Assembly (NCBI GenBank): GCA_943704425.1 | Contig: CALSCP010001344.1 | Coordinates: 1-35,529, forward strand | Direction of reading: 5' to 3' | DNA length: 35,529 nucleotides | From: Ministeria vibrans ATCC 50519 | Taxonomy: Eukaryota > Protista > Filasterea | The notes under the pieces: generated by a model | What the model was told of the DNA's origin: nothing | The model's input: only the letters and a program-made list of their open reading frames with translations | Database searches by the model: none | Position numbers and translations under genes: made by a program | Shown: in pieces, positions 7,538 to 35,529 of the stretch | Layout of the letters: every line of letters starts with the position of its first letter | Position numbering within the stretch: the stretch's first letter is position 1

Positions 7538-7907
7538 GAAATTATTTCTTCTTTTGGTTCTGATTGTAACATTGTGCATTATAAACGAGTACTGCTACTG
7601 GCTGGCCTTGTAATCGTCCTCCTGCTGGCTCTTGAAGTTGTTCTCGTTGTAGTCTGCGCCTCTGAGGAAATTATTTCTCTGATGTTAACATTGAGCATTA
7701 TAAACGAGTACTGCTCTTGGCATCGGCCTCCTGCTGGCTCTTGAAGTGGTTCTCGTTGTAGTCTGCACCCCTGAGGAAATTATTTCTTCTATTGGTTCTG
7801 ATTGTAACATTGTGCATTATAAACGAGTACTGCTACTGGCTGGCCTTGGCATCGGCCTCCTGCTGGCTCTTGAAGTTGTTCTCGTTGTAGTCTGCGCCCC
7901 TGAGGAA
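7538..7907. repeat. three tandem imperfect copies (~130/110/130 bp) of the LIM gene 3' end
   Basis: The unit gaaattatttc...cattataaacgagtactgct...gctcttgaag.gttctcgttgtagtctgc..ctgaggaa starts at 7538, 7667 and 7777. Confidence 0.92.
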
Positions 7908-9023
7908 CGCCTGCGTGTAGTGGGGCTTACAGTAGAAGTCGGTGCCAAGACTAGCAAACTCGGCGAGCTTAAGCACCGCCTGGCAAGTGGTACAGCGGAA
8001 GCACGTCTTGTGGTACGGCGTGCCGTTGGCGACCACCTGCTCCTGCGGATACGCTGTCTTGGAGCACTTTCCGCACTTGTTCGACTGGAACATTTGAGTA
8101 GCATCTGCTTTAGGCGCCTGAAAATGAGTCGGTGAGGAGAGTATACAGTGAGAAATATTGTGACAGAATCACGCATACAAGTGGTACCTTTTTTCCGCCC
8201 TTTTTCACTCTGGGACCAGTGCACAGCTTGATTTCCTTTCGTGTGTAGTTCTCAATTGATGAATCGTCAATTTCCGTCTTGAGCAGTTTCACAATTGTGT
8301 CATCATTAAATCCTAAAAGAGAATGTGACAAACGCGAAACAGCGAAACACGCGACAAACAATCAACAATCAAACACACATTTCACACAAATTATAATAAT
8401 AAAAAACGTATCACTTCACATTTGCAAAGCCCATTACGTACTCTGCATCAGCAAATGGCCCTCATAGACTACCACTTTGTGCTTCTTCGCCGTAATCAGA
8501 GTGCCTGACAGCGCCTCCATAATATCCTCCGTCTCCTTGAACAGCTCTCCAAACGCAATCTCATAGTGTCCTTCGCTTCCTTCCACCCGCTTCCCTTTCT
8601 CCACAATCACCCCAATCAGCTTGCGGATTTCCTGGTCCACCCACTTTGCAGCTGCGCGCGCCCGCTCGTCTGCCTTGGACAGCGGCTGGTCGTCGTTGAG
8701 TCCTTCGTCGTCTGACAGCGTAAACTCCCTTTGCACCGTCTCGCTTGTCTTCTTGCTGCCCTCTTCTGCCGCCTTTCGTTTCCTCTCTGCTTCCTCTTCC
8801 CCCTCTTTTGTTGCCTTCTCTTTCGCCCGCTTTGCCTCTTCTTCCTTAGCCATCTTCTTCTTCTTCGCCTCTTCTTCTTCAGCCATCTTCTTCTTCTTCG
8901 CCTCCGCCTCCGCCTTTCGCTTCTTCTCTTCCTCTGCACGCTTTCGCGCTGCCGCCTCCTCCTCGGCCTTCATCATCTTCTTCTTCCTCTCTTCTTCTTT
9001 TTCTTCTTCTTCCGCCTTTCGCT

Positions 9024-9059
<36 letters not shown>

Positions 9060-9616
9060 CCTCTTGAGCACGCTCCTTCTTCATCTTCTCTTCCGCTTCC
9101 GCCTGCTCCTCCGCCCGTCTCTTCGCCTCTTCTTCTTCCGCCTTGCGCCTCTTTGCGTCTTCCGCTGCCGCTGCCCCTGCTGCGTCCCCTCCAGCCCCGT
9201 CCGCCCGTCCTTCCCGTTCGATCCTTCCGTCCTGTGGTTTGTCGTTCGATTCCGCATCCTGCGCCGCACCCGCCTCTTCTTCCCCTTCTGCCGCATCGGA
9301 CGCCGTTTCTGCACCCGTGCCAGGCGTTGGAGTGCATTCCGAGTCCTCCTTTGGCCCTATCAACGAAACGTGTTTCAAAAGCGTGGGCTCACTTTTTGGA
9401 ATCGACGCGGGCANNNNNNNNNNTTTTTTTTTTTTTTTTTTGACGTTTACGAATCACACCGGAAACCGCATCGGCCTTTTCGACGCTTGGTTGGGAGGGA
9501 GGGAGCTTGTCGGCGGCGCCGGTTGCAATGGCGGGGGTCTCCGGCGGAACCGATGTGTCCAAAGTGGTCTTTGGGTCTGCAGTGACTTTTGCTGCTTTGC
9601 TATTCTTTGAACCCAT
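7833..9616 (-). CDS. Costars + LIM domain protein with N-terminal myristoylation motif and E/K/A-rich helical linker
   Basis: Starts MGSKNSK at 9616. Costars WVDQEIRKLI...IAFGELF...EALSGTLITAKKHKVVVYEGHLLMQ|RFNDDTIVKLL is spliced at 8442/8312. Exon 8117-7833 then encodes the LIM domain (CGKC...YHKTCFRCTTC...YCKPH). Linkage of the first exon crosses an N gap. Confidence 0.82.
9414..9423. other. assembly gap (10 N)
   Basis: Ns in the sequence next to poly-T. Confidence 1.
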
Positions 9617-10000: not shown

Positions 10001-11038
10001 ATGTCTATTGCCGCTGCAGCGACTTCTGCCGCTGCGTCGGCGTCGCGAGCGGCCGTTTCGGCGGGACTCCGTTTTATCGACACGCACTCTCACCCCAACC
10101 GCTGCTCACACGCACCCCGGTACGCCGAGGCGAGTGATGCTACTCTGAGGGCTGTGGCGTTGCGTGGTCTGGTCCCCGCCGAATCCCAGCTTGACGCCTA
10201 CATTGCGGTCTTTTGCGAGGCGGAGAGTGTCGTCGAGTCGAGCAACGCAATGCACTACAGCCACTACCACAGCGACCGCATGTTCTTCACTGTCGGCTGC
10301 CACCCCCACACAGCCTCAACCTACGACGCCGCGTATGAAGAAGCCATTCGCCAGGGTAAGATATGCTGTTTGTTATGCAATCTGTCGACTGCTCTGTTAT
10401 GAAACCTGTTATGAAACCTGTTGACTGACCTGCGACGCTCTTGAAGCCGCACAGCACCCTCGATGCGTGGCCATTGGTGAGGCAGGTTTGGATTACTTCA
10501 GAGATAACTCACCGCGCGACGTAAGTTGGGAGTTGTGTCGCAGAGTTTGTGCACTCACTTTGCCACTATAATGCAGGTGCAACTTAGCGTCTTTGAGCGC
10601 CAAATTGAATTGGCAGTGGAACTTTGCAAGCCTCTGGTGATCCATTCACGAGACGCCGATGATGATATGCTGAATGTGATGCGTCGATGTTTGCCCTCTG
10701 ATCACCTCATTCACCTGCACTGTTTCACATCGCAATCTGCTGACTTTGCCGCCGCACTTCTCCGCGAGTTTCCCCGACTGAAAATTGGATTTACCGGTCT
10801 CATCACGTACAAAAGCGCACGTGGTGTGCAAGACATTGTTCGCAACACCATTCCACTTGAGAGACTGCTCAGCGAGACGGATGCTCCCTACATGACCCCT
10901 GAGCCGCTCAGGAAGGTGCGCGCCGACTCCGGGCACGTCGCACTCGTCGCCAGTCGCATTGCAGTGCTCAAGGGCGTCCCTCTCGCCGCTGCAGTCCGTG
11001 TGCTGCGTGACAATGCACGTGAAATCTATGGAATTTGA
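10001..11038 (+). CDS. TatD-family deoxyribonuclease
   Basis: Exons 10001-10355, 10447-10520 and 10577-11038. Motifs FIDTHSH, VGCHPH, AIGEAGLDY, PLVIHSR, HLHCF and LSETDAPY are present. Confidence 0.93.
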
Positions 11039-11144
11039 GAAAATTCAAACATACACTGACGGCTTGGAGGCACAAAAGAATTTGGACAGTCCAAGTATGA
11101 AATGTTGTAGACAGTCAAAAAATAAAACAATATATTTCATCTCT

Positions 11145-14100
11145 CTAACAATCTGAAGAAGAGGCGACTCCGTTGCTTCGTCGGTACAGAAAAATGTCTC
11201 CGTCATTGACCATTCCCGCCGTCCAGTCCCTCCAAATACGCCCCACCAGCGCAGCCTGCAGTGCGTTGGTCGGGTCCAGCATTCGCAGTCGCCGTCGCAG
11301 CTCAACCGCACTCACATACGCCTCATCCTCGTCAAACACCTTTCCTTTGCCCAGTGCGAGAATGAGTAGCTCAGTCAGGCGCGTCACACCCCCACTCGTA
11401 AAGCTGCTGGCGTCGCGCAGTGCGCTCGTAATGGCCTGGCGTGCGTACCCTCGAACGGGCCCAGTGCGCTCGGCCATGGTCAGGTCCTCCTCTGGCACAA
11501 TCAATGCTCCGCTGTTGCAAAAGTCGCAGAACACCAACACGTTGCCACCCAGCCAGCCCACGTCGTCGCGGAGAATCGCGGAAAGGCTCAACAAACTTAG
11601 GCGTGTCAGTGAACCACCAACAGTCTCACGAGCGTCACTCAACAGCAGACCACCCCCACTGTCCTCGGCACCATGCCCAATCAGATGCACAATCAACAGC
11701 GAGTCCTGTCCCGCACCCACTCCCGCCTTCGTCGCCAACCGTGTCGTCGCATCCACAACCAGACTCCTCCTCACTGCGTCACCCTTCTTCCAGTCCACCA
11801 CCGTCTCCACATCACATCCTCGATCGCCCCACATCTTCGCCAGCTGACGAACACTCTTCTGCACCTCAGGAAGATCGTCAAAGTCCTTCAGCGCAGCATT
11901 GCCCGACGACGCATACCGACTCACTCCCACGATCAACACTGACGCATGCGAGTAGATCCCCATTGCTACACCAACAAGAACGTATCAAAAACAATCACAA
12001 TCATGTCAAACTACAAATACTAATGAATCGTACCTTCTTGCTTGCACCACCACCTCTTCAGCTTCAAATTGCACATCCGCTTCTGTCCATCAAAGCGTTT
12101 CAGCTCCGCATTCACAACCTCCGCATCGCGATAGTCTTCGGGCCGCTCAGCGACACTCTTCGGCGCAAACAGCGGATGCAATGGATGCGTCTCGCCCACT
12201 GCCAGTGCAAACGGATGCGCAGGCACCACCACAGCACGCCCGCGCCAGCCCCATCGCAGAGACCGCGTCGACTCACACACAGTCTCAACCAGTCGAGTCC
12301 ACGTCCGCTCGCACTTGATCGCCTTCTCTCCCAGCATCTCCAGTCGAATGAACGACTCGTTGCTATTGAGGCGCAGTCGCACAGACTCACACCCGTCCAT
12401 CGTCAGCGCATTCGTGCATCGTTGCGTCGCTTCAATGTGAATGTCAAGTGGACACGCCCGCCATAGGGCCACCACAACCAGATGGAAGGTGGCCAGTGAC
12501 ACTGGAAGCTCCTCCCACTTGCCATTATCCGCATTGTGCGTCATCTGGTACAGGAACAGCACTGCGGGCGCTGGTGGTGCGTTCGCCACAAAGGGCGCAC
12601 TCTCAGGCAGCAGCATCGGGATGAAAAGGTGGTCATGATGCGCATGCACCAGACTGAGGTGCTCCAGACACGCCATGAATGCTGACACGTCCGTCACATC
12701 TGCACCTGCCAGCACAGGGTCGCCGCTGCTCTTTGTCTTGGCCGCCGTCCACACCAGCCACTCCGCCACCTCCCGACAGAATCCCGCCTCGGACCGTGTT
12801 TTTGACTCGTCCAGAGACACAAGCAGGCGCTCGGTGCGCTTCACGTCGACCGAACGACCCGCCTGCGTCACCTTCGTCAGCATTTCCTTGGCACGCGCAC
12901 TCCCCGCTCGTTCCCACCGTGCCATCACCACCGAACACAGCAGTTCCACCGCCGAGATCAGCCGCGGAATGTCAAACACAATTGTGTCCTTCTCGTCCAG
13001 CGACTGCGCCGTCGCATCTTGGCGGCACACCACAATGTCCGCCGCAGACTCAAGGTACGGCACAAGTTCGGCCCGCACCTTTGCCCCGTCCGGCATAAGA
13101 TCAGTCAACATGACGGGTGGCTCAGTGCTCAGCTGGAGCGTGTCAAGGTGTTCGACAGAGGAGAGCAGTGGAATCTCGTTCAGTCGGGCGGCACGACCAA
13201 GCAGGTCCTGTGCACACACATACTCCATCGGCAGCGTGCGTCGTCGCGGTGCGACGTGCAGTGCCTGTGTGAGTGCGCTGAAGCCCACCTTCTTGCTGCT
13301 GCCCACCTGGAAGAACGGCAGAGCAGAGTCGGCAGGCTGCATCAAGTGATCGCCCAACTGCAACCCAACGAGATGAAACACTTGGTCGGAGACGGCCGCC
13401 AGCAGGTCGACGGGAACTGTGTTGTTGGGGAATGTGTCAACGTGAGTGCCCACAATGAGCACACGGAAGTATGAGTCGTCGGTCGAGGGCACTTGGTGCG
13501 CAATAATGTGGGCCCACTTGGACAGGTGCTCGTACTGTCGCTGTGCCTTGACTGGATCGTCCATGACAGACAGGTCAAATACAAGCAGGTAGGCCGACTC
13601 GGAGCCCATGAAGAGCGCAGGAAGCGAGTCAAACATCTCTTCACCTAACAATAACAGCATCAATAGGAGTGGAAGACAGTGTTCTTTGTCGTCTGCGCTA
13701 TACCGGCAAAGTCAAATGTTTCAAGGTCAATGTGGCCCTCGCGCAGTTCAGACTCGAGAAGCGTGTGCACGGCCAACATGGTGACTGAACTGGGCGTGGG
13801 GGCGGCCGGTGGCGGGGTGGATGGGCACGGAGAGGATGGTGATGATGAGGGAGAAGTGGTCGTCGAGATGGAGTGGTGCGTTGGACTGCCTGCTTGAGCG
13901 GCAGGCTGTGATGTCTGCTGTGCAGTCGTGGTGGTGGTGGTTGTCGTAGTGGTTGTCGATGGTGTGGTCTGCTGCTCGTCCTCCTCCGCCTTGCGCCCTC
14001 CAATGAGACTGGCCAGGCGGTGTTCCTCTTGCGGCACTGCCTCAAACACGCCTGTCGCCCCATCCAGCACCATTCGCACTCGCTCCAGTCGAGTGGCCAC

Positions 14101-15916
14101 TGACCGATCTGCCTCCGTTGGCAGTGTCTGTCCGCGCAGTGCACACAGCAGGGCCGTTTTGCCCGCCAGCACTGCCCCCAGACACAACAGTTTGATCGTG
14201 CGTGGTTCTACTGATCCTCGCTCAATGGCCGCCTCAAATGCCCTCTGGTACACGCTGGGAATCAAGAAAAGAACGGCATGTTAAAAACGAGAGAGATGTA
14301 TTCGTCTGTTGTAGCACTCACGTTTTGACAAACTGCGCAATGGACCATCGGTGGACTGTCTTGTCTGCACAGTGGACAATCAGTGTGTTCCCATCCGACG
14401 AGAACTCAATTGTGTCCACTCTAAACAAACACGCAAAAGCGAGTGAGTGAGTAAGTGATGAAAGGAATTGAACACACAAACCTGGAAGGAACTGCAAATT
14501 GTGTGCGAATGGTTCCTTCGAATCGGGTCCACACTTTGATTGTTCTGTCACTTGATCCACTGTAGATGGTGGTTCCGTCTCGAGACACAGCGACTGAGCA
14601 AACATAACTAAAAAGCAGAAACAAGCACATATTAGACAGGTCTTCTCTGCACAATTCAACTCACTCCGTGTGTTCCTTCAATGTCCGTTCGCACTCTCCC
14701 GTCAGCACATTCCACACTTTCACCGTCTTGTCAGATGAGCCACTGATGACATGGCGTCCGTCAAAGGAAAACACTGCTGACCGGACAAGACTGCAAACGA
14801 AGAATATAAGAGACCAAACCACACGGAATAGTGATTGAGTGACTTACGAAGAGTGTCCACTGAGTGTCTTGAGACACTTTCCACTCACAACAGACCATAT
14901 TTTGATTGTTTTGTCCCATGACCCACTGAGCACTGTTTGTCTATCAAATGAGAATGCCACGCACAGCACATCTCTGTAAACCACAAAACAATCAATACAT
15001 CAGAAGAAATTACACTCTTTCTCGATTTGAATTACTTTGAATGTCCCTGGAACGTGATTTCACACTTTCCCGTTTGACTGTCCCACAGTTTCATTGTGTG
15101 GTCGGATGAGCCACTCAGTATTTTCGTTCCGTCCGGTGAAAATCTCACTCCTCGTACAACACTGAAATGCATAAGAATGAACATCAACACAAATCAGAAT
15201 CACTCTTACTCTGTGTGGTCTTTCAGAATGAGCAGACACTCTCCCGATTGACTGTCCCACACTCGAACTGTATCGTCACCACTTCCACTGACCAATTTGA
15301 GTCCATTGGGTGAGAAATCAACAGACCAGACAACACTACACAAATGAATATTAGACACAGTGACACTCAGTGGGATATCACTCTCTCTTTCTCTAACTTT
15401 GTGTGACCAGTGAGAGTGAGAGTGCACTTTCCACTGTGCATTTCCCACACTCTGACTGACCCGTCCTCTGATCCAGTGACCACTCGCAGTCCATCGGGAG
15501 ACACTCTCACACTCGACACAGGACTAAAAGAAACCCAAAGATGGTCAGACACCAATCTCCATTGTGTTCATGGTAATTGAAAATGAAATGTCCAATTTGT
15601 GCACAACACAACGCACAGAAAGAACGGGTATTCTTATTCGTCTCGTTTCAACTTACCGTTCGTGCATGAGTGTTCTGACACACTTTTTGTCTTTCACAGA
15701 CCACACTTTGGCTGTGCTGTCGCGTGATGCACTCACAACCCACTGCTCGTCTGGAGACAGCGTAACTTCATAAATGACACCAGAGTGACCAGTGAGAGTG
15801 ACCACTCCACAGTCAACCTGTTCCCCTCCTTTGCCGTCCACTTCCACCAGCGCAACATGTGATCCTTTGTCAACAGCGACCAGTGAGTCGTCAACAGAGT
15901 GGCGAATAGCGGACAT
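11145..15916 (-). CDS. WD40 - Roc GTPase - COR-like - caspase-family (C14) protease fusion, Roco-type, about 1365 aa
   Basis: Exons 15916-15657, 15523-15398, 15335-15210, 15161-15036, 14973-14848, 14790-14665, 14607-14482, 14420-14322, 14254-13704, 13644-12034 and 11965-11145. All introns are GT-AG and the exons total 4098 nt in one frame. Roc motifs: G1 GAVLAGKT, G3 DFAG|[11 protein letters not shown]4 IVGTHVD. COR-like motif: LFIPMLLP. Protease motifs: HLIGHG and VFCDFCNSG. The start codon is the least certain part. Confidence 0.85.
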
Positions 15917-16023
15917 TCAGTTCTGAAAGAGAAACCCCATTTGTTGAGTGATCATAGAACAGTTGAGCACGACACCCTCCCGGTCCAACCAATACTGCAC
16001 CGCTCTTCCACACCCCCACTCTC

Positions 16024-16475
16024 TCCCACTCTCTACAGCGACAAGAAGAAGAGTGTTCTGTTTTGGCCATATTTTATCCACTGAATGACAAACAAACCAA
16101 AACTAATAATAACAAACACACTCTCACCCATGTCCCACCACCAATACACACACTGTAGCCCAACCATGCCATATGGGCTGTCCCTCACCACAATATCGTC
16201 TTCTAGAATTAATTCCAGTTCGACTCGACCGAAAACTACATTCGGCCTACCGCCCAACACACACACACAATGCGATCCCACGGCGCCCCAGCAGCCCCCG
16301 CACCCCCCACGGCACCCCCCTGCCCCGTGCCGCACACCAATAGCAAGCCGTGTGGCTCTCTGTCGACTCCTTCAAAATTTTAAGGGCTCACCCACACACA
16401 AAACACAGACAAAAACGCACAAGAACACACGTCGACAATGCCAGCCCACCCACAAACACCTACCAGTTGCTAGTG
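16024..16475. repeat. dispersed ~450-bp repeat, copy A (inverted copy at 35090-35529)
   Basis: 16024-16236 is nearly identical to the reverse complement of 35313-35529. The outer half shares blocks such as gtcga.tccttcaaa.ttt and aacacctacc. Confidence 0.9.
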
Positions 16476-16927: not shown

Positions 16928-19008
16928 ATGGTAAGGCCGTGTTTCTCTGTCAGTCGACTCGTCTGAGGCTCCTTCCTTCGCGAATGTTCAATCTTGATTT
17001 GCACTGTGACCAAACGGACTCTTTGCCCGTCTCTTCCACCCTCCCTGTCTCCCCACACCTTCCGTGCGTGTGTCCAGTGCGCGTGTCAACTGCGCCATGT
17101 TGAGCTGTGGCTGTAGATTTGTCCTTTCAAGTTTGAAACGCTCCAATTCGTGTCCAGGCTGTTAAATGACCGCCTCTGTCACCCATTGCCCTCTCTGTGG
17201 TTATCTTTTGTCGTTCCTGCCGGCGTTTCTCTCCGAATATGCTTGTTTTCCCCTTTTTTTTTTCTCTTTTCACTTTTTTTTTTTTTCATGATCGTTCTCT
17301 CGACCTTTTTCAAACTTGTCGCGTTTGTCTGTGCCACAGGGACAAGGACAGTCTAATCTTCCGCCTGGGGCGAATCCAGGCGGCAATGGCAGTGGTGACG
17401 GCAAGGAGAAGAAGAAGTACGAGCCGCCTGCGCCTCCAACGATCGGCAAGCATCGGCGCAAGAAGCAGGGCCCGCAGTCGACGAACAAATTACCACACAG
17501 TACGCAATTGCCGCCCTCGACTCTCAGCCTTGCTGCGCTGGGCTGGGTTGGGGGTCTTTGGGTGTCGCAACTCTGTCTTTGAATGGCTGTTGAGTCTGTG
17601 TGTGTGTGTGTGTGTGTGGTTTTGTTTTGTGCATCTCTACTCACACTATGTTTCTTTTCTACTTAGTCACACCTCACTCTAAATGCCGGCTGCGAATGCT
17701 CAAGCTGGAGCGAATCAAAGACTACCTGTTGCTCGACGAAGAGTTTGTAAAAAATCAACAGCGACTGAAGCCGGACGATGAGAAGAACCAAGAGGACCGC
17801 ATGAAGGTGGATGAGCTGCGCGGGACGCCGATGGGAGTGGGGACACTGGAGGAGATTATCGATGACAACCACGCGATTGTGTCGAGCAGTCTTGGGCCCG
17901 AGTACTACGTGACGATTCTGTCCATTGTCGACAAGGACCAGCTTGAGCCCAACTGCTCCGTTCTTTTGCATCACAAGGTCATGGCCATTGTTGGTGTGCT
18001 CGCCGACGACGTCAACCCCATGGTCTCCGTCATGAAGCTCGATAAGGCGCCCACCGAGACGTACGCCGACATTGGTGGTCTTGACGAGCAAGTTCGCGAA
18101 ATCAAAGAGGCAGTCGAGGTATATCGCACAACGCCAGAGCGAAACATTATTATTATTGTTAATTTATTCAATTGTATAAATCTTTGCAGCTGCCTTTGAC
18201 GCACCCGGAACTGTACGAGGACATGGGAGTGCGACCACCGAAGGGAGTGATCCTGTACGGCCCGCCTGGCACAGGCAAGACACTGCTGGCCAAGGCAGTC
18301 GCAAACCAGACGAGCGCCACCTTTCTGCGTGTGGTGGGCAGTGAACTCATTCAAAAGCATCTTGGCGACGGACCCAAGCTCGTCCGCGAGATGTTTCGTG
18401 TTGCCGAAGACCATGCGCCTTCTATCATCTTTATTGACGAAATCGACGCGGTCGGCACCAAGCGGTACGACAGCAACAGTGGCGGTGAGCGTGAAATCCA
18501 GCGCACCATGCTTGAGCTGCTCAACCAGCTTGATGGCTTCGACGCGCGTGGCGATGTCAAAGTCATCATGGCTACTAACCGCATTGAGAGCCTTGATCCC
18601 GCCCTTATCCGTCCCGGGCGTATTGACCGAAAGATTGAGTTTCCTCTTCCCGATGAAAAGGTACACATATATACTTGTTGTGTTTGTTATAACTGAGCGT
18701 GTTTTTAGACAAAAAGGAAAATCTTCGAGTTGCACGTGTCCAAGATGACCCTGACGGACGATGTCAAACCGGACGAGTTTATTACGGCCAAGGACAATCT
18801 CAGTGGCGCCGACATCAAAGTAATCAGTTTGGCTGTGGGTGTGTGTGTGACTTACGCCGTTGTGGTTGTGTAGGCGATTTGCACTGAAGCGGGTCTGCTT
18901 GCGCTGCGTGAGCGTCGTCTACGTGTCACCCTGGATGACTTCAACAAGGCCAAGGAGTCGGTGCTGCTTAAGAACTCGGGTGGTCATCCCGAGGGTCTCT
19001 ACATGTGA
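16928..19008 (+). CDS. PSMC1: 26S proteasome AAA-ATPase Rpt2 (subunit 4), 443 aa
   Basis: Exons 16928-16930 (ATG only), 17340-17499, 17667-18118, 18190-18660, 18709-18819 and 18874-19008. Motifs [37 protein letters not shown] and the C-terminal HbYX tail EGLYM*. Confidence 0.96.
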
Positions 19009-19401: not shown

Positions 19402-22308
19402 ATGTCACAGGGTGAGGCAGAGCGGCTGGGTGCGGTGGTGAACAAGCGGCCGCCGCACGGACCCGACTTGGGAGTGTTTCTGCGGCCACAGCTCAAAACG
19501 ATGCCTGCGCAGTGGAGCAACGCCGAATACTGCCTGCGCGCCGACCAGCTCAAGACGTGGTCGGAGCCATGGCTGTCGGCGGCTGTGTCGCGCGCCCCCG
19601 TGCTCATGGCGGCGCTGGATGCGCTCCACACGTCCATTGCGCGTCTGCAGTTTATCTCCAACAGCGTCTTCAAGGGCCCCCTGCCCAACGACCTTGTCGA
19701 GGTGGGCACTGGGGCAGACGCCAAGGCCAAGCGCGTCCTTGTCACCGCCGGCGACACCGTTCTCGCTCTCTTTGCGCATCTGGGTCGAATCGACGTTATG
19801 ACTGAGCTGCTCGAACGAATCCGCCTTGAAAAGGACCCTCACAAGCCGGAAACACAGCGCGCGTACGAGGCGGAGGAGCTGCAGACGAAGCTGCGCGACG
19901 AGTACTGTCGTCACGAGCTGCTGCGCATCGGTGCTGAGCGCGGCGAGGTTGTCTCCTGGGACGACAAGGCACGACTGCCCGCCGTCAAGCGCCTGCACGA
20001 GGAACGCGAGCGAATGCTCAAGGCGTCGCAGTCGCTCGATCCCGTAAACAAGGCCAACGACGAGGGTATTACGCCACTTGAGATTGCCATCGCAAATGGT
20101 CACTGGGCTCTCATGAAGCTGCTGGTGCAGCACGACGCCATTATTACGCCGCGCGCTTTTAGTCTCATTGCCGCACACAAATCCCCCGAACCCATCTCAT
20201 TCCTGGAGCAACAGCCCGGCACTCCGCACGACTTGGCGGCACCCATTGCGTGCCTTGACCATGAGGTCACGGCGCTTCATCTGGCCTGTCGCGATGCGCC
20301 CCTTCAAACATTCATTGACATTCTCAACTATGCCATGGAACGCGCACGCACTAAAGACCTCGCGCCGCTCTTCACCGTTGTCGACGATGCTGGCGAGACC
20401 CCCTGGGACTACGCTGCGTCGGCCGGGCGGCTTGACCTGTTGCGCCACATGGTCGAAGACCGTGGTATCTCCCTCAAAAACACGTCGCACCTCTTCCACT
20501 ACGCCTGTCGCGATGCCGCCGCCCTGCCCCATATCAAGGAGCTTCTTACATTTCTCTATGAGCAGCAAGTGGGTGTGTATACCACGGACCGCGCCGGCAA
20601 GACTGCCTTGCACTACTTGGCCGCCAGCGACGCACATTTGCCGCTGCTCACCTGGCTGTTCGAGATGCTGTGTCCGCCTTCCGTCGATATCGCGACGCAG
20701 GCGGGCGTCACGTTGTTGCATACAGCGTGCACAGCAGGCGCCCACGAGACGGCTTTGTACTTGCTGCAGCACGGTGCCGATGCGCATTGTGTGAGCGAGA
20801 TTGAGCGACTGGCGTCTATTCATTATGCCGCCCGCGGTGGCTGTGTACCGATCGTGACCGCGCTGGTCAACGACTACGACTGCAACCCGCTTCTTGCCTT
20901 CCCGCCTCACATGCGCTCGCCCGTGCACTATGCAGCCGAGGCAGCCCACGTCGATGTGGTCAGCGAGCTCTTTCGGTTAGTCACACACCAGTTTGCGGAC
21001 GAGAACGAGGAGGCAGTGCTCGACACTCTGCGCAACGATACCTCACCGCCCTCGACGACGCCCACCTATGACTCGAGCGTGCCGTACGATGCAGAAACGG
21101 ATAGAATGGAGCGCCTCGTCAACAAAAAACGGCTGCTTGAACGACAGATTGCGCTGCACGGCGGACGCAGACACTATGCCCTTTTGGTAGGTCTGCATCT
21201 CGCGTGCAAGCCCGACGGTGCTCGTCCCCTCCACTTGGCCGTGCGTGCTGCCGCCGACCGTGTTGTCGAGTGTCTTCTCGAGCTGGGCGCCGCCGCACAG
21301 GGTCCACTGGCCAAGGTGCTCTCGCGCAACACCACTCCGCTACTCGAGGCGTGTCAACTTTCGCCGTCCAAGCAGGGGGCATTGCGCACCGCAATCGTGC
21401 TTCTCGACCATTGCGGTGCAGGCTGTGTCAACGAGCCCATGGGCCCCGACAGACGCACCCCGCTCTGGCTGGCCGCGAGCGTTGGTCACGCGGCGCTTGT
21501 TGAAGAGCTGCTGGTGCGACGCCAGGCCAAGCCCGAACAGTGCGACCGCGGTGGTAAAACGCCCTTGATGGCAGCCATCTTTCATGCGCCGCGTGAGCTT
21601 GTGTGCGACACCGTGCGCACCCTGTTGAACCACGGTGCCAGTGCCGTGACGCCTACCAAACAGCCACCCTTGACGCCCCTTGCTGCCGCCGCCAAGCTTG
21701 CACATCCCGAGCTCGTGCGTCTTTTGCTTGACCATGCCGCTGCGCACAACCTCCCTGACTTGCTTAACACCTCCTGTCATCGTGGCTGCACTCCGCTACA
21801 CCTGGCCATTTTCGACCCGGACGAAGAGATGCCGCGCCTCGAGCGCTTTCGCAAACCCGGCTTTGACGAGGATGCGCTCGAGCGAGACCATCGCGATCGC
21901 GAGCTGTGCGTGCGCTATTTGCTTGAGGCAGGCGCCGAGCCCAACACGGTCGACGATGTTCACGGCGGGTCCGCACTGCAGCTCGCCATGATCCACGGTG
22001 GTGGCTCGCTCGTCGAGACTTTCTGTCGGCGAGCACAAGGGCTCACGCGCACTCATGTCTTGCACGTGCTTCAGCGCGTCGAGCAACTGGCTTCGCGCTA
22101 CGACCCGCTCCCAAGCGCACAGGCACAGGCCATTGCGCGCGCCGCCTGCGACAGCCGTCGACGCACCTGTGGCGCCTGCCGCCTTTTTGATGCCAGCAAC
22201 ACCATGCTCCTCTGTGCCAATTGTGATCGCGAGAAATACTGCGACCAGGTCTGTCAGCGCGCTGATTGGAAGAGTCACAAGCCTGTTTGTAATAAGAAAA
22301 AGAAATGA
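19402..22308 (+). CDS. ankyrin-repeat protein with C-terminal MYND zinc finger
   Basis: Single 968-aa ORF with many GxTPL/TALH ankyrin starts. The C-terminus CGAC...CANCDREKYCDQVCQRADWKSHKPVC fits the MYND pattern. Confidence 0.9.
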   Translation: MSQGEAERLGAVVNKRPPHGPDLGVFLRPQLKTMPAQWSNAEYCLRADQLKTWSEPWLSAAVSRAPVLMAALDALHTSIARLQFISNSVFKGPLPNDLVEVGTGADAKAKRVLVTAGDTVLALFAHLGRIDVMTELLERIRLEKDPHKPETQRAYEAEELQTKLRDEYCRHELLRIGAERGEVVSWDDKARLPAVKRLHEERERMLKASQSLDPVNKANDEGITPLEIAIANGHWALMKLLVQHDAIITPRAFSLIAAHKSPEPISFLEQQPGTPHDLAAPIACLDHEVTALHLACRDAPLQTFIDILNYAMERARTKDLAPLFTVVDDAGETPWDYAASAGRLDLLRHMVEDRGISLKNTSHLFHYACRDAAALPHIKELLTFLYEQQVGVYTTDRAGKTALHYLAASDAHLPLLTWLFEMLCPPSVDIATQAGVTLLHTACTAGAHETALYLLQHGADAHCVSEIERLASIHYAARGGCVPIVTALVNDYDCNPLLAFPPHMRSPVHYAAEAAHVDVVSELFRLVTHQFADENEEAVLDTLRNDTSPPSTTPTYDSSVPYDAETDRMERLVNKKRLLERQIALHGGRRHYALLVGLHLACKPDGARPLHLAVRAAADRVVECLLELGAAAQGPLAKVLSRNTTPLLEACQLSPSKQGALRTAIVLLDHCGAGCVNEPMGPDRRTPLWLAASVGHAALVEELLVRRQAKPEQCDRGGKTPLMAAIFHAPRELVCDTVRTLLNHGASAVTPTKQPPLTPLAAAAKLAHPELVRLLLDHAAAHNLPDLLNTSCHRGCTPLHLAIFDPDEEMPRLERFRKPGFDEDALERDHRDRELCVRYLLEAGAEPNTVDDVHGGSALQLAMIHGGGSLVETFCRRAQGLTRTHVLHVLQRVEQLASRYDPLPSAQAQAIARAACDSRRRTCGACRLFDASNTMLLCANCDREKYCDQVCQRADWKSHKPVCNKKKK

Positions 22309-35089: not shown

Positions 35090-35529
35090 GTCTGTACTAC
35101 CAGGTAGGTGTTGGGGTGCGCTAGGAACGACGATACAGCGCGTTTCGTTGTGTTTGGGAGAACCTTCAAAAATTTGAAGGAATCGACTCGTTTGCGTACT
35201 ATGCGCCTTTGGCCCATCGCATGGAGCAGGGGTGTGTGTGTTTGTTGGAGCAAGGTGGCAGTGTGCTTTGGTGTCGAATTTGTGTTGTGTGTTGAGTTGT
35301 ACGGACGAAAGTGTTTTCGGTCGAGTCGAACTGGAATTAATTCTAGAAGACGATATTGTGGTGAGGGACAGCCCATATGGCATGGTTGGGTTACAGTGTG
35401 GGTGTCTGTTGGTGGTGGGGCATGGGTGAGAGTGTGTTTGTTATTATTAGTTTTGGTTTGTTTGTCATTCAGTGGATAAAATATGGCCAAAACAGAACAC
35501 TCTTCTTCTTGTCGCTGTAGAGAGTGGGA
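35090..35529. repeat. dispersed repeat, copy B (inverted relative to 16024-16475; runs off window end)
   Basis: 35313-35529 is nearly identical to the reverse complement of 16024-16236. Confidence 0.9.

Follow-up and report, generated by a model that had tools for sequence, protein, structure and literature searches.

Repeat-bearing receptors with a fast-evolving ligand face are known from brown algae and from fungi. In Ectocarpus, ROCO and NB-ARC-TPR genes encode one repeat per exon, with leucine-rich repeat (LRR) exons of 72 nt and tetratricopeptide repeat (TPR) exons of 126 nt, and the shuffled arrays are not alignable (Zambounis et al. 2012, PMC3341825). In Podospora anserina, WD40 repeats vary at codons 7, 9, 25 and 27, which form two top-face pairs, each around a conserved residue, one in the d-a loop and one in the b-c turn (Paoletti 2007, PMC1805685). 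The gene considered here is carried on a 35,529-nt contig of Ministeria vibrans ATCC 50519 (CALSCP010001344.1; the window, labelled C1344 among its paralogues), where it occupies the minus strand throughout; all coordinates are window positions. It is a new architectural variant of the ROCO proteins with a hypervariable WD40 sensor, and it resembles the Ectocarpus and Podospora systems in its fast-evolving ligand face but is a member of neither, showing no shuffling, no concerted evolution and no NACHT domain. Six consecutive 126-nt exons are regarded with good confidence as blades 2–7 of an apparently eight-repeat WD40 sensor within a WD40-Roc-COR-caspase receptor family, with an exon layout that is a fixed relic and diversification at five codons per blade.

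The likeness to the Ectocarpus LRR-ROCO and NB-ARC-TPR receptors (PMC3341825; PMC11378527) lies in a Roc-COR core, one repeat per symmetric exon of equal length, positively selected residues on the ligand face, and a family that is both large and lineage-specific. Unlike those receptors, the sensor is built of WD40 rather than LRR or TPR units and forms a predicted closed propeller in which exon number and order are fixed and neither shuffling nor variation in length occurs; it is fused to a caspase-like effector, and the introns are in phase 2, whereas the Ectocarpus study screens for runs of exons of multiple-of-three length ('phase 0' in its terms). With the Podospora NWD/HNWD genes (het-e, het-d and het-r), which encode WD40 NLRs (Paoletti 2007, PMC1805685; Chevanne 2010, PMC2873952), the gene shares 42-residue units, the same four hypervariable positions, and a multi-gene repertoire linked to a death effector, predicted in the present case. 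The fungal repeats, however, are intronless, near-identical, concerted and variable in number, whereas here each blade has its own exon in a fixed number and order, and the blades within the gene are only 32–54% identical to each other. The switch also differs, being Roc-COR rather than NACHT, and the domain order is reversed, with an N-terminal sensor and a C-terminal effector. Literature searches for WD40 proteins with one repeat per exon and for WD40-ROCO-caspase proteins returned no relevant paper.

A preliminary description of the window had placed the six 126-nt exons here, separated by phase-2 introns of 48–62 nt at a single repeat position, and this anatomy is borne out. Each exon lies between an upstream pyrimidine-rich tract with AG and a downstream GT, starts with one nucleotide that finishes a codon, ends with two nucleotides of the next, and has an open frame. 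Domain searches and fold predictions were run exon by exon, with scripts reading across an intron solely for the three bases of a junction codon. Translated alone, every 126-nt exon matches PF00400 at 31.5–42.2 bits (gathering score 27), with residues 2–27 aligned to model positions 14–39. The introns interrupt the repeat one and two-thirds codons past the GH-like dipeptide (after GH-x). This point falls in the d-a loop, and one exon is thus predicted to correspond to one structural blade (a-b-c-d), as opposed to the conventional d+abc sequence repeat. The introns flanking the six-exon array are also in phase 2 and at the same repeat position (upstream exon end 15657; downstream exon 14420–14322). 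The upstream exon carries blade 1 (PF00400 37.9 bits, residues 39–73; donor GT at 15656). The downstream 99-nt exon has a weak Pfam WD40 match (E 0.03, below threshold), and its WD-like pattern suggests part of a further blade; together these would give an eight-blade propeller with velcro closure. Because the same layout is present in 13/13 paralogues examined, a chance origin is excluded.

Within each blade, codons were numbered from the intron-split junction codon (0) through the remaining 41 (1–41). Differences between the window gene and its paralogue C916 are concentrated in the WD40 exons and fall on the same codons of each blade, namely 0, 1, 3, 19 and 21. These hypervariable codons differ at 29/90 sites (32%), compared with 15/666 (2.3%) in the scaffold and 2/281 (0.7%) in the introns (Fisher p = 9e-18 for hypervariable codons versus introns). 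Since the positions were picked on this pair, the independent pair C1443/C1080 provides an unbiased test, and the result is the same: 31/90 (34%) at hypervariable codons, 14/666 (2.1%) in the scaffold and 1/259 (0.4%) in the introns (Fisher p = 2e-19). The hypervariable codons of these young pairs are therefore some 50–80-fold above intron divergence. Codons 1, 3, 19 and 21 are replaced in 15/24 instances in each young pair, and all of the changed hypervariable codons (30/30) are non-synonymous. In older pairs the hypervariable codons are saturated at 0.6–0.7, and the introns (0.21) outpace the scaffold (0.14), which indicates that the introns are neutral and the scaffold is under purifying selection. 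A further 24 fragments on tiny contigs, 90–100% identical to the C1443 array, differ by 23% at hypervariable codons, 2.6% in the scaffold and 1.9% in the introns.

A third close copy is available from an independently assembled ENA contig (ERZ23497376, SCHR19-1_SAMN09406036_METAG-scaffold_1299; locus L027), which is 97.8% identical. Among the three closest copies, several sites have three residues joined by single-base steps (e.g. CCT/CGT/GGT and GTT/GCT/CCT), which fits serial point substitutions. The R1-2, R1, D-1 and D+1 positions of blade 1 vary among them too, while the 99-nt last blade is invariant. One blade border has eight residue combinations among 12 sequences, and hypervariable sites are enriched in Tyr, Trp, Asn and Arg.

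All substitution types are present at hypervariable codons, with transitions to transversions of 10:19 and 13:18 in the two young pairs, as near saturation. An A-specific mutation spectrum of the kind produced by diversity-generating retroelements, or one biased in another way, was considered and rejected because every substitution type is seen. About nine tandem double changes were counted by eye in the C1344/C916 comparison, approximately the number estimated for independent changes at 32% divergence.

The hypervariable codons can be placed on known interaction sites. The three top-face hotspots defined for WD40 propellers are R1-2 and R1, the two variable fingerprint residues of strand a with a bulky residue between them, and D-1, the residue preceding a conserved Asp (Wu et al. 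2012, PMC3419727). The blades follow the pattern x1-V2-x3-S4-V5 ... S-G-S-x19-D20-x21-T, by which codons 1, 3 and 19 would correspond to R1-2, R1 and D-1, respectively. Codons 1, 3, 19 and 21 also match Podospora codons 7, 9, 25 and 27, with equal spacing and equal conserved residues flanked. The top-face positions that the preliminary description had named as varying do vary, at five codons per blade and between near-identical copies, and the sensor appears to diversify by fast amino-acid replacement at these predicted top-face codons.

Some points weigh against reading the array as a sensor diversified in this way. The 50–80-fold excess over introns is very high for point mutation and selection alone, and part of it may come from backbone gene conversion or from a special mutational input. 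The assembly is fragmented and possibly metagenome-derived, so some of the paralogues could be strain variants. The splicing and start codon of the gene model are predictions, and sequence rules underlie both the count of eight blades and their top-face mapping. Sequence support for the Roc, COR and caspase parts is weak (E 0.002–0.07, below Pfam cut-offs), and their membership comes mainly from predicted folds.

One alternative is that the copies are older than their introns suggest, with gene conversion homogenizing the backbone and introns while selection keeps the differences at the five codons, a combination of concerted evolution and balancing or diversifying selection. The rate excess speaks for this, since selection acting on point mutations would have difficulty producing it unaided, as does a mosaic among the three close copies, in which L027 sides with the window across Roc but with C916 across the caspase region and 3′ flank (35 runs among 126 informative sites). 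This mosaic suggests either recombination between copies or, as L027 was assembled from short metagenome reads, a chimeric contig, and no proof of recombination is drawn from it. Hypervariable codons are only 6–50 nt apart, and conversion tracts would need to stop within those intervals; intron divergence is clock-like in the older pairs, and the stepwise single-nucleotide paths among the three copies fit point mutation. Diversifying selection at the same codons would still be needed, and conversion as the principal explanation is considered unlikely, though it deserves some weight.

In a stronger version of special mutational input, this family of a unicellular eukaryote would be the ROCO-based counterpart of NLR receptors that serve immunity or allorecognition, with the five codons per blade diversified by a dedicated process, either site-targeted mutagenesis or templated micro-conversion, instead of ordinary mutation and selection. 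Dedicated input would explain why 60% of hypervariable codons are replaced while introns differ by 0.5%, and target marking might then involve the introns that border and interrupt the patch of hypervariable codons. The probability assigned to this reading is low.

Whether the exon layout itself is used for diversification can be judged from 13 annotated paralogue arrays (C1344, C916, C1758, C2467, C1443, C1080, C1887, C2424, C491, C986, C1679, C2206 and C1339). In all 13, six array exons follow a first exon and precede a short last exon, with no change of order, and the array exons are mostly 126 nt long, with a few of 120, 123, 129 or 132 nt. Exons that seemed to be missing from C2206, C1339 and C2424 are not absent; degenerate or odd-length exons or microsatellite-bearing introns are present instead. 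Two loci have array introns grown by microsatellites, L021 (C2424:6919–7293) and L025 (C2467:20207–20340), with (ATA)n adjoining a gap of Ns and (GA)n(TA)n, respectively, and these show intron length to be free where exon length is fixed. A gap of Ns also follows the C1758 array, which was considered as a possible 'orphan' array. In a maximum-likelihood tree of 65 exons with hypervariable bases masked, only 13 label changes are needed to group exons by rank in the array (minimum 5; mean of shuffled labels 41.8; none of 200 shuffles reaches 13), whereas 56 are needed by gene, so that there is no grouping by gene, and none of the exons has a same-gene sister in this tree. The three near-identical copies have identical exon sets, and the paralogue arrays are colinear in alignment. 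Within the C1443 subfamily (loci L014, L015, L017 and L021, being C1443, C1080, C1887 and C2424) ranks 2 and 3 are sister groups, as are ranks 1 and 4, and the rank-2 and rank-3 exons share KALSGS ... KLWDIER ... TFEGH; this reflects an old exon duplication or exon-to-exon conversion that left exon number unchanged.

Across the 13 paralogues and the tree, recent duplication, loss, swapping, copy-number variation and concerted evolution of exons have left no sign, and the layout is best interpreted as a fixed relic: exons were duplicated in tandem long ago, and the family has since inherited them unchanged, with no present-day shuffling. The opposing idea is that the symmetric 126-nt exons are active cassettes, skipped, duplicated or swapped among paralogues in the style of the Ectocarpus LRR-ROCO genes. 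The frame would be kept in any such event, as had been pointed out in the preliminary description, and the sister ranks in one subfamily do record an old exon duplication or conversion. A closed propeller, however, is poorly tolerant of blade loss. L027 and the 13 paralogues have the same exon number and order, and the tree follows rank rather than gene. The brown-algal precedent, also invoked earlier, is real, but the colinearity here differs from Ectocarpus, in which alignment of the whole repeat domain is 'meaningless' (PMC3341825). Exon shuffling with copy-number variation is rejected on the constant count and order in the 13 paralogues and the grouping by rank, and active cassettes are improbable. 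Of the earlier proposal of a modular, diversifiable recognition domain, the diversifying recognition-type domain stands but exon modularity as the means of diversification does not. The preliminary description had opposed to its proposal a single-copy gene with purifying selection at the surface positions and no exon exchange among paralogues; the family has at least 40 loci and the changed surface codons are non-synonymous without exception, and it is only the lack of exon exchange that agrees with the exon phylogeny.

That mixed strains or collapsed repeats have produced false paralogues and variants is very unlikely. The assembly comprises 2860 contigs, many of them shorter than 1 kb and with array fragments only, and the flanks of C916 and the window diverge abruptly at the gene ends, as such an artefact might predict; but the same pattern recurs in two independent pairs, in the 24 fragments and in the independently assembled ENA contig, sequencing errors would not target five in-frame codons per blade, and the conclusion on hypervariable codons is unchanged if the copies are alleles rather than paralogues. 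Relaxed constraint, with the hypervariable codons as unconstrained loop positions or the copies as pseudogenes, draws on the position of these codons in loops and on single stops in the caspase open reading frames (ORFs) of some paralogues, but it is scarcely credible because neutral sites cannot outpace introns as these do, no changed codon (0/30) is synonymous, every reading frame in the gene is open, and purifying selection acts on the scaffold in older pairs.

The complete gene is modelled with 11 exons (Table 1), and the model is supported by exon lengths that sum to 4098 nt, or 1366 codons including the stop (a 1365-codon protein). As in the preliminary description, the Roc-COR-caspase part has only two internal introns (13703–13645 and 12033–11966), both in phase 1.

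Table 1. Predicted features of the WD40-Roc-COR-caspase gene and of the region upstream of it (window positions).
Feature	Coordinates	Strand	Remarks
Upstream region duplicated along with the gene	15917..16423	-	Similarity to C916 paralogue stops at 16423
First coding exon	15657..15916	-	ATG at 15916; ~40 N-terminal residues with closing d-strand VVTLTGH, then predicted WD40 blade 1; phase-2 end
Predicted blade 2, 126-nt exon	15398..15523	-	AG/GT borders, phase 2; PF00400 39.4 bits
Intron, 62 nt, phase 2	15336..15397	-	
Predicted blade 3, 126-nt exon	15210..15335	-	AG/GT borders, phase 2; PF00400 35.8 bits
Intron, 48 nt, phase 2	15162..15209	-	
Predicted blade 4, 126-nt exon	15036..15161	-	AG/GT borders, phase 2; PF00400 38.7 bits
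Intron, 62 nt, phase 2	14974..15035	-	
Predicted blade 5, 126-nt exon	14848..14973	-	AG/GT borders, phase 2; PF00400 42.2 bits
Intron, 57 nt, phase 2	14791..14847	-	
Predicted blade 6, 126-nt exon	14665..14790	-	AG/GT borders, phase 2; PF00400 34.9 bits
Intron, 57 nt, phase 2	14608..14664	-	
Predicted blade 7, 126-nt exon, VP in place of GH	14482..14607	-	AG/GT borders, phase 2; PF00400 31.5 bits
99-nt exon, putative strands a-c of eighth blade, without d strand	14322..14420	-	Phase 2 at both ends; WD-like pattern read from sequence
Exon with predicted Roc N-half	13704..14254	-	P-loop GAVLAGKT; Thr/Ser/Pro-rich low-complexity insert; DFAG (G3) split by phase-1 intron; homologous ORFs in paralogues
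Exon with predicted Roc C-half (THVD = G4) and COR domain, long helical region	12034..13644	-	Profile and fold matches
Last exon, predicted caspase-fold (clan CD) domain	11145..11965	-	His97 (HLIGHG), Cys149 (DFCNSG); stop 11147–11145

The central module is Roc-COR and not a NACHT or NB-ARC NTPase of the STAND (signal transduction ATPases with numerous domains) class; NACHT genes sit elsewhere in the genome. The P-loop, DFAG and THVD motifs of Roc can be read in the sequence, and Pfam Ras/Roc matches on this gene are below cut-off (E 0.04–0.07). A profile of 11 paralogues searched against the PDB has LRRK2 Roc chains as its sole matches (E 0.002–0.01). The AlphaFold (AF2) model of the 547-residue Roc-COR exon product has a predicted local distance difference test (pLDDT) score of 80.4, and all of its best 30 matches in a Foldseek search of the PDB belong to ROCO proteins (LRRK1, LRRK2, and the C. 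tepidum and M. barkeri Roco proteins; best E 1.9e-8), with the isolated COR domain 3dpt_B among the matches (template-modelling score 0.53 on the target). In the ESM Atlas the best named clusters are COR-A/Roc, with COR-A clusters at 0.95–0.96. No sequence-level COR match to the Roc-COR exon product was found. On the predicted folds, Roc and COR are assigned, with COR directly after Roc. The Thr/Ser/Pro-rich insert between the P-loop and DFAG (~13770–13995, minus strand) is the chief site of indels separating the window copy from C916, with 44 differing columns in one 100-nt bin.

The last-exon product has a predicted caspase/haemoglobinase fold with putative catalytic His and Cys residues, His97 and Cys149 being invariant in the alignment of nine paralogues. 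Its weak sequence matches are to CHAT (E 0.002) and Metacaspase-4 (E 0.013), below Pfam cut-offs. The AF2 model (pLDDT 69.9; predicted template-modelling score 0.78) is matched by Foldseek to MALT1, caspases 9, 8, 7, 3 and 6, and metacaspases (best E 1.7e-7, probability 1.0).

Like LRRK2, LRRK1 and the bacterial Roco proteins, the gene product has Roc followed directly by COR, as judged from fold matches, with WD40 in the same chain, and it shares with LRRK2 a THxD motif in G4. Unlike them, it has no kinase and no LRR, its WD40 domain is N-terminal and hypervariable, a predicted caspase-fold protease is C-terminal, and the sequence is highly divergent. With metacaspases, the paracaspase MALT1 and CHAT-type proteases of clan CD it shares the predicted caspase/haemoglobinase fold and a His-Gly ... 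Cys dyad, but it differs in the fused ROCO switch, in the lack of death, CARD or Ig domains, and in matches that fall below Pfam cut-offs.

In the mechanism proposed for this WD40-Roc-COR-caspase family, the variable top face would bind a variable ligand (non-self or a pathogen product), binding would be relayed through the Roc-COR GTPase and dimerization switch, and the relay would activate the caspase-like protease at the C terminus, with death or defence as the probable response. The outcome would be NLR-like logic on a ROCO core. If this is true, the family represents a third, independent build of a large intracellular receptor repertoire, in which a WD40 binding face is rewritten codon by codon, an LRRK2-type Roc-COR takes the usual place of NACHT or NB-ARC, and a caspase-like effector lies in the same chain. 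Hypervariable WD40 faces, known from fungal allorecognition genes, would then have arisen again on another chassis without reshuffling of repeats. What ROCO switches sense, a question that bears on LRRK2, could also be studied in this natural system, and the family carries a warning that one repeat per symmetric exon is, by itself, no evidence of exon shuffling.

The family is large. A search of the 29.7-Mb assembly gives 69 matches to the COR exon product and 57 to the caspase product, corresponding to at least 40 loci, and a six-blade profile finds at least 546 candidate blades, mostly in short open frames ~180 nt apart, the spacing of the blade-per-exon pattern. Dozens of contigs of 110–750 bp (C2204, C1718, C1114, C2752, C407, C1481, C1720, C2776 and ~25 more; loci L033–L059) contain fragments of one WD40 array only, at 91–100% identity. 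The assembly breaks inside arrays at the hypervariable codons, and copy number is therefore underestimated, the family being larger than contig counts suggest. A phmmer search of 1.84 billion representatives recovered only the ORF itself and three short fragments, with no relative outside the lineage; two metagenome scans (one with a protein, one with a profile) and a phmmer search of the PDB gave no match.

The window matches C916 by blastn at 97% over 11141–16423 only, and the flanks are unalike, identifying the two as a gene-sized duplicate pair. The 110-nt upstream piece at 16314–16423 occurs twice in the C916 contig (C916:14028–14137 and 14354–14463), the second copy at 100% identity. At the right end of the window, the 183 bases at 35347–35529 (plus strand) repeat 16020–16202 (minus strand) in opposite orientation, are 98.9% identical to the start of L027 and also match C916; another family member probably starts at this contig end. 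A different kind of WD40 gene is present in the same genome at C2017:48305–48898 (plus strand), where an intronless array with a strict 126-nt period lies inside a 1092-residue open frame, in contrast to the family with one blade per exon; the five NACHT matches listed for the genome do not include it.

The neighbouring genes are ordinary and encode a LIM domain protein (7836–8093, minus strand), a TatD-type DNase (10526–11035, plus strand), a proteasomal AAA ATPase (17600–18693, plus strand) and an ankyrin-repeat protein (19402–22305, plus strand). The TatD-type DNase gene converges on the 3′ end of the WD40-Roc-COR-caspase gene, and the ankyrin-repeat protein has 968 residues with a MYND finger at its C terminus. 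A run of Ns at ~9380–9440, representing a scaffold gap, adjoins a very Glu/Lys/Ala-rich ORF (8434–9378, minus strand).

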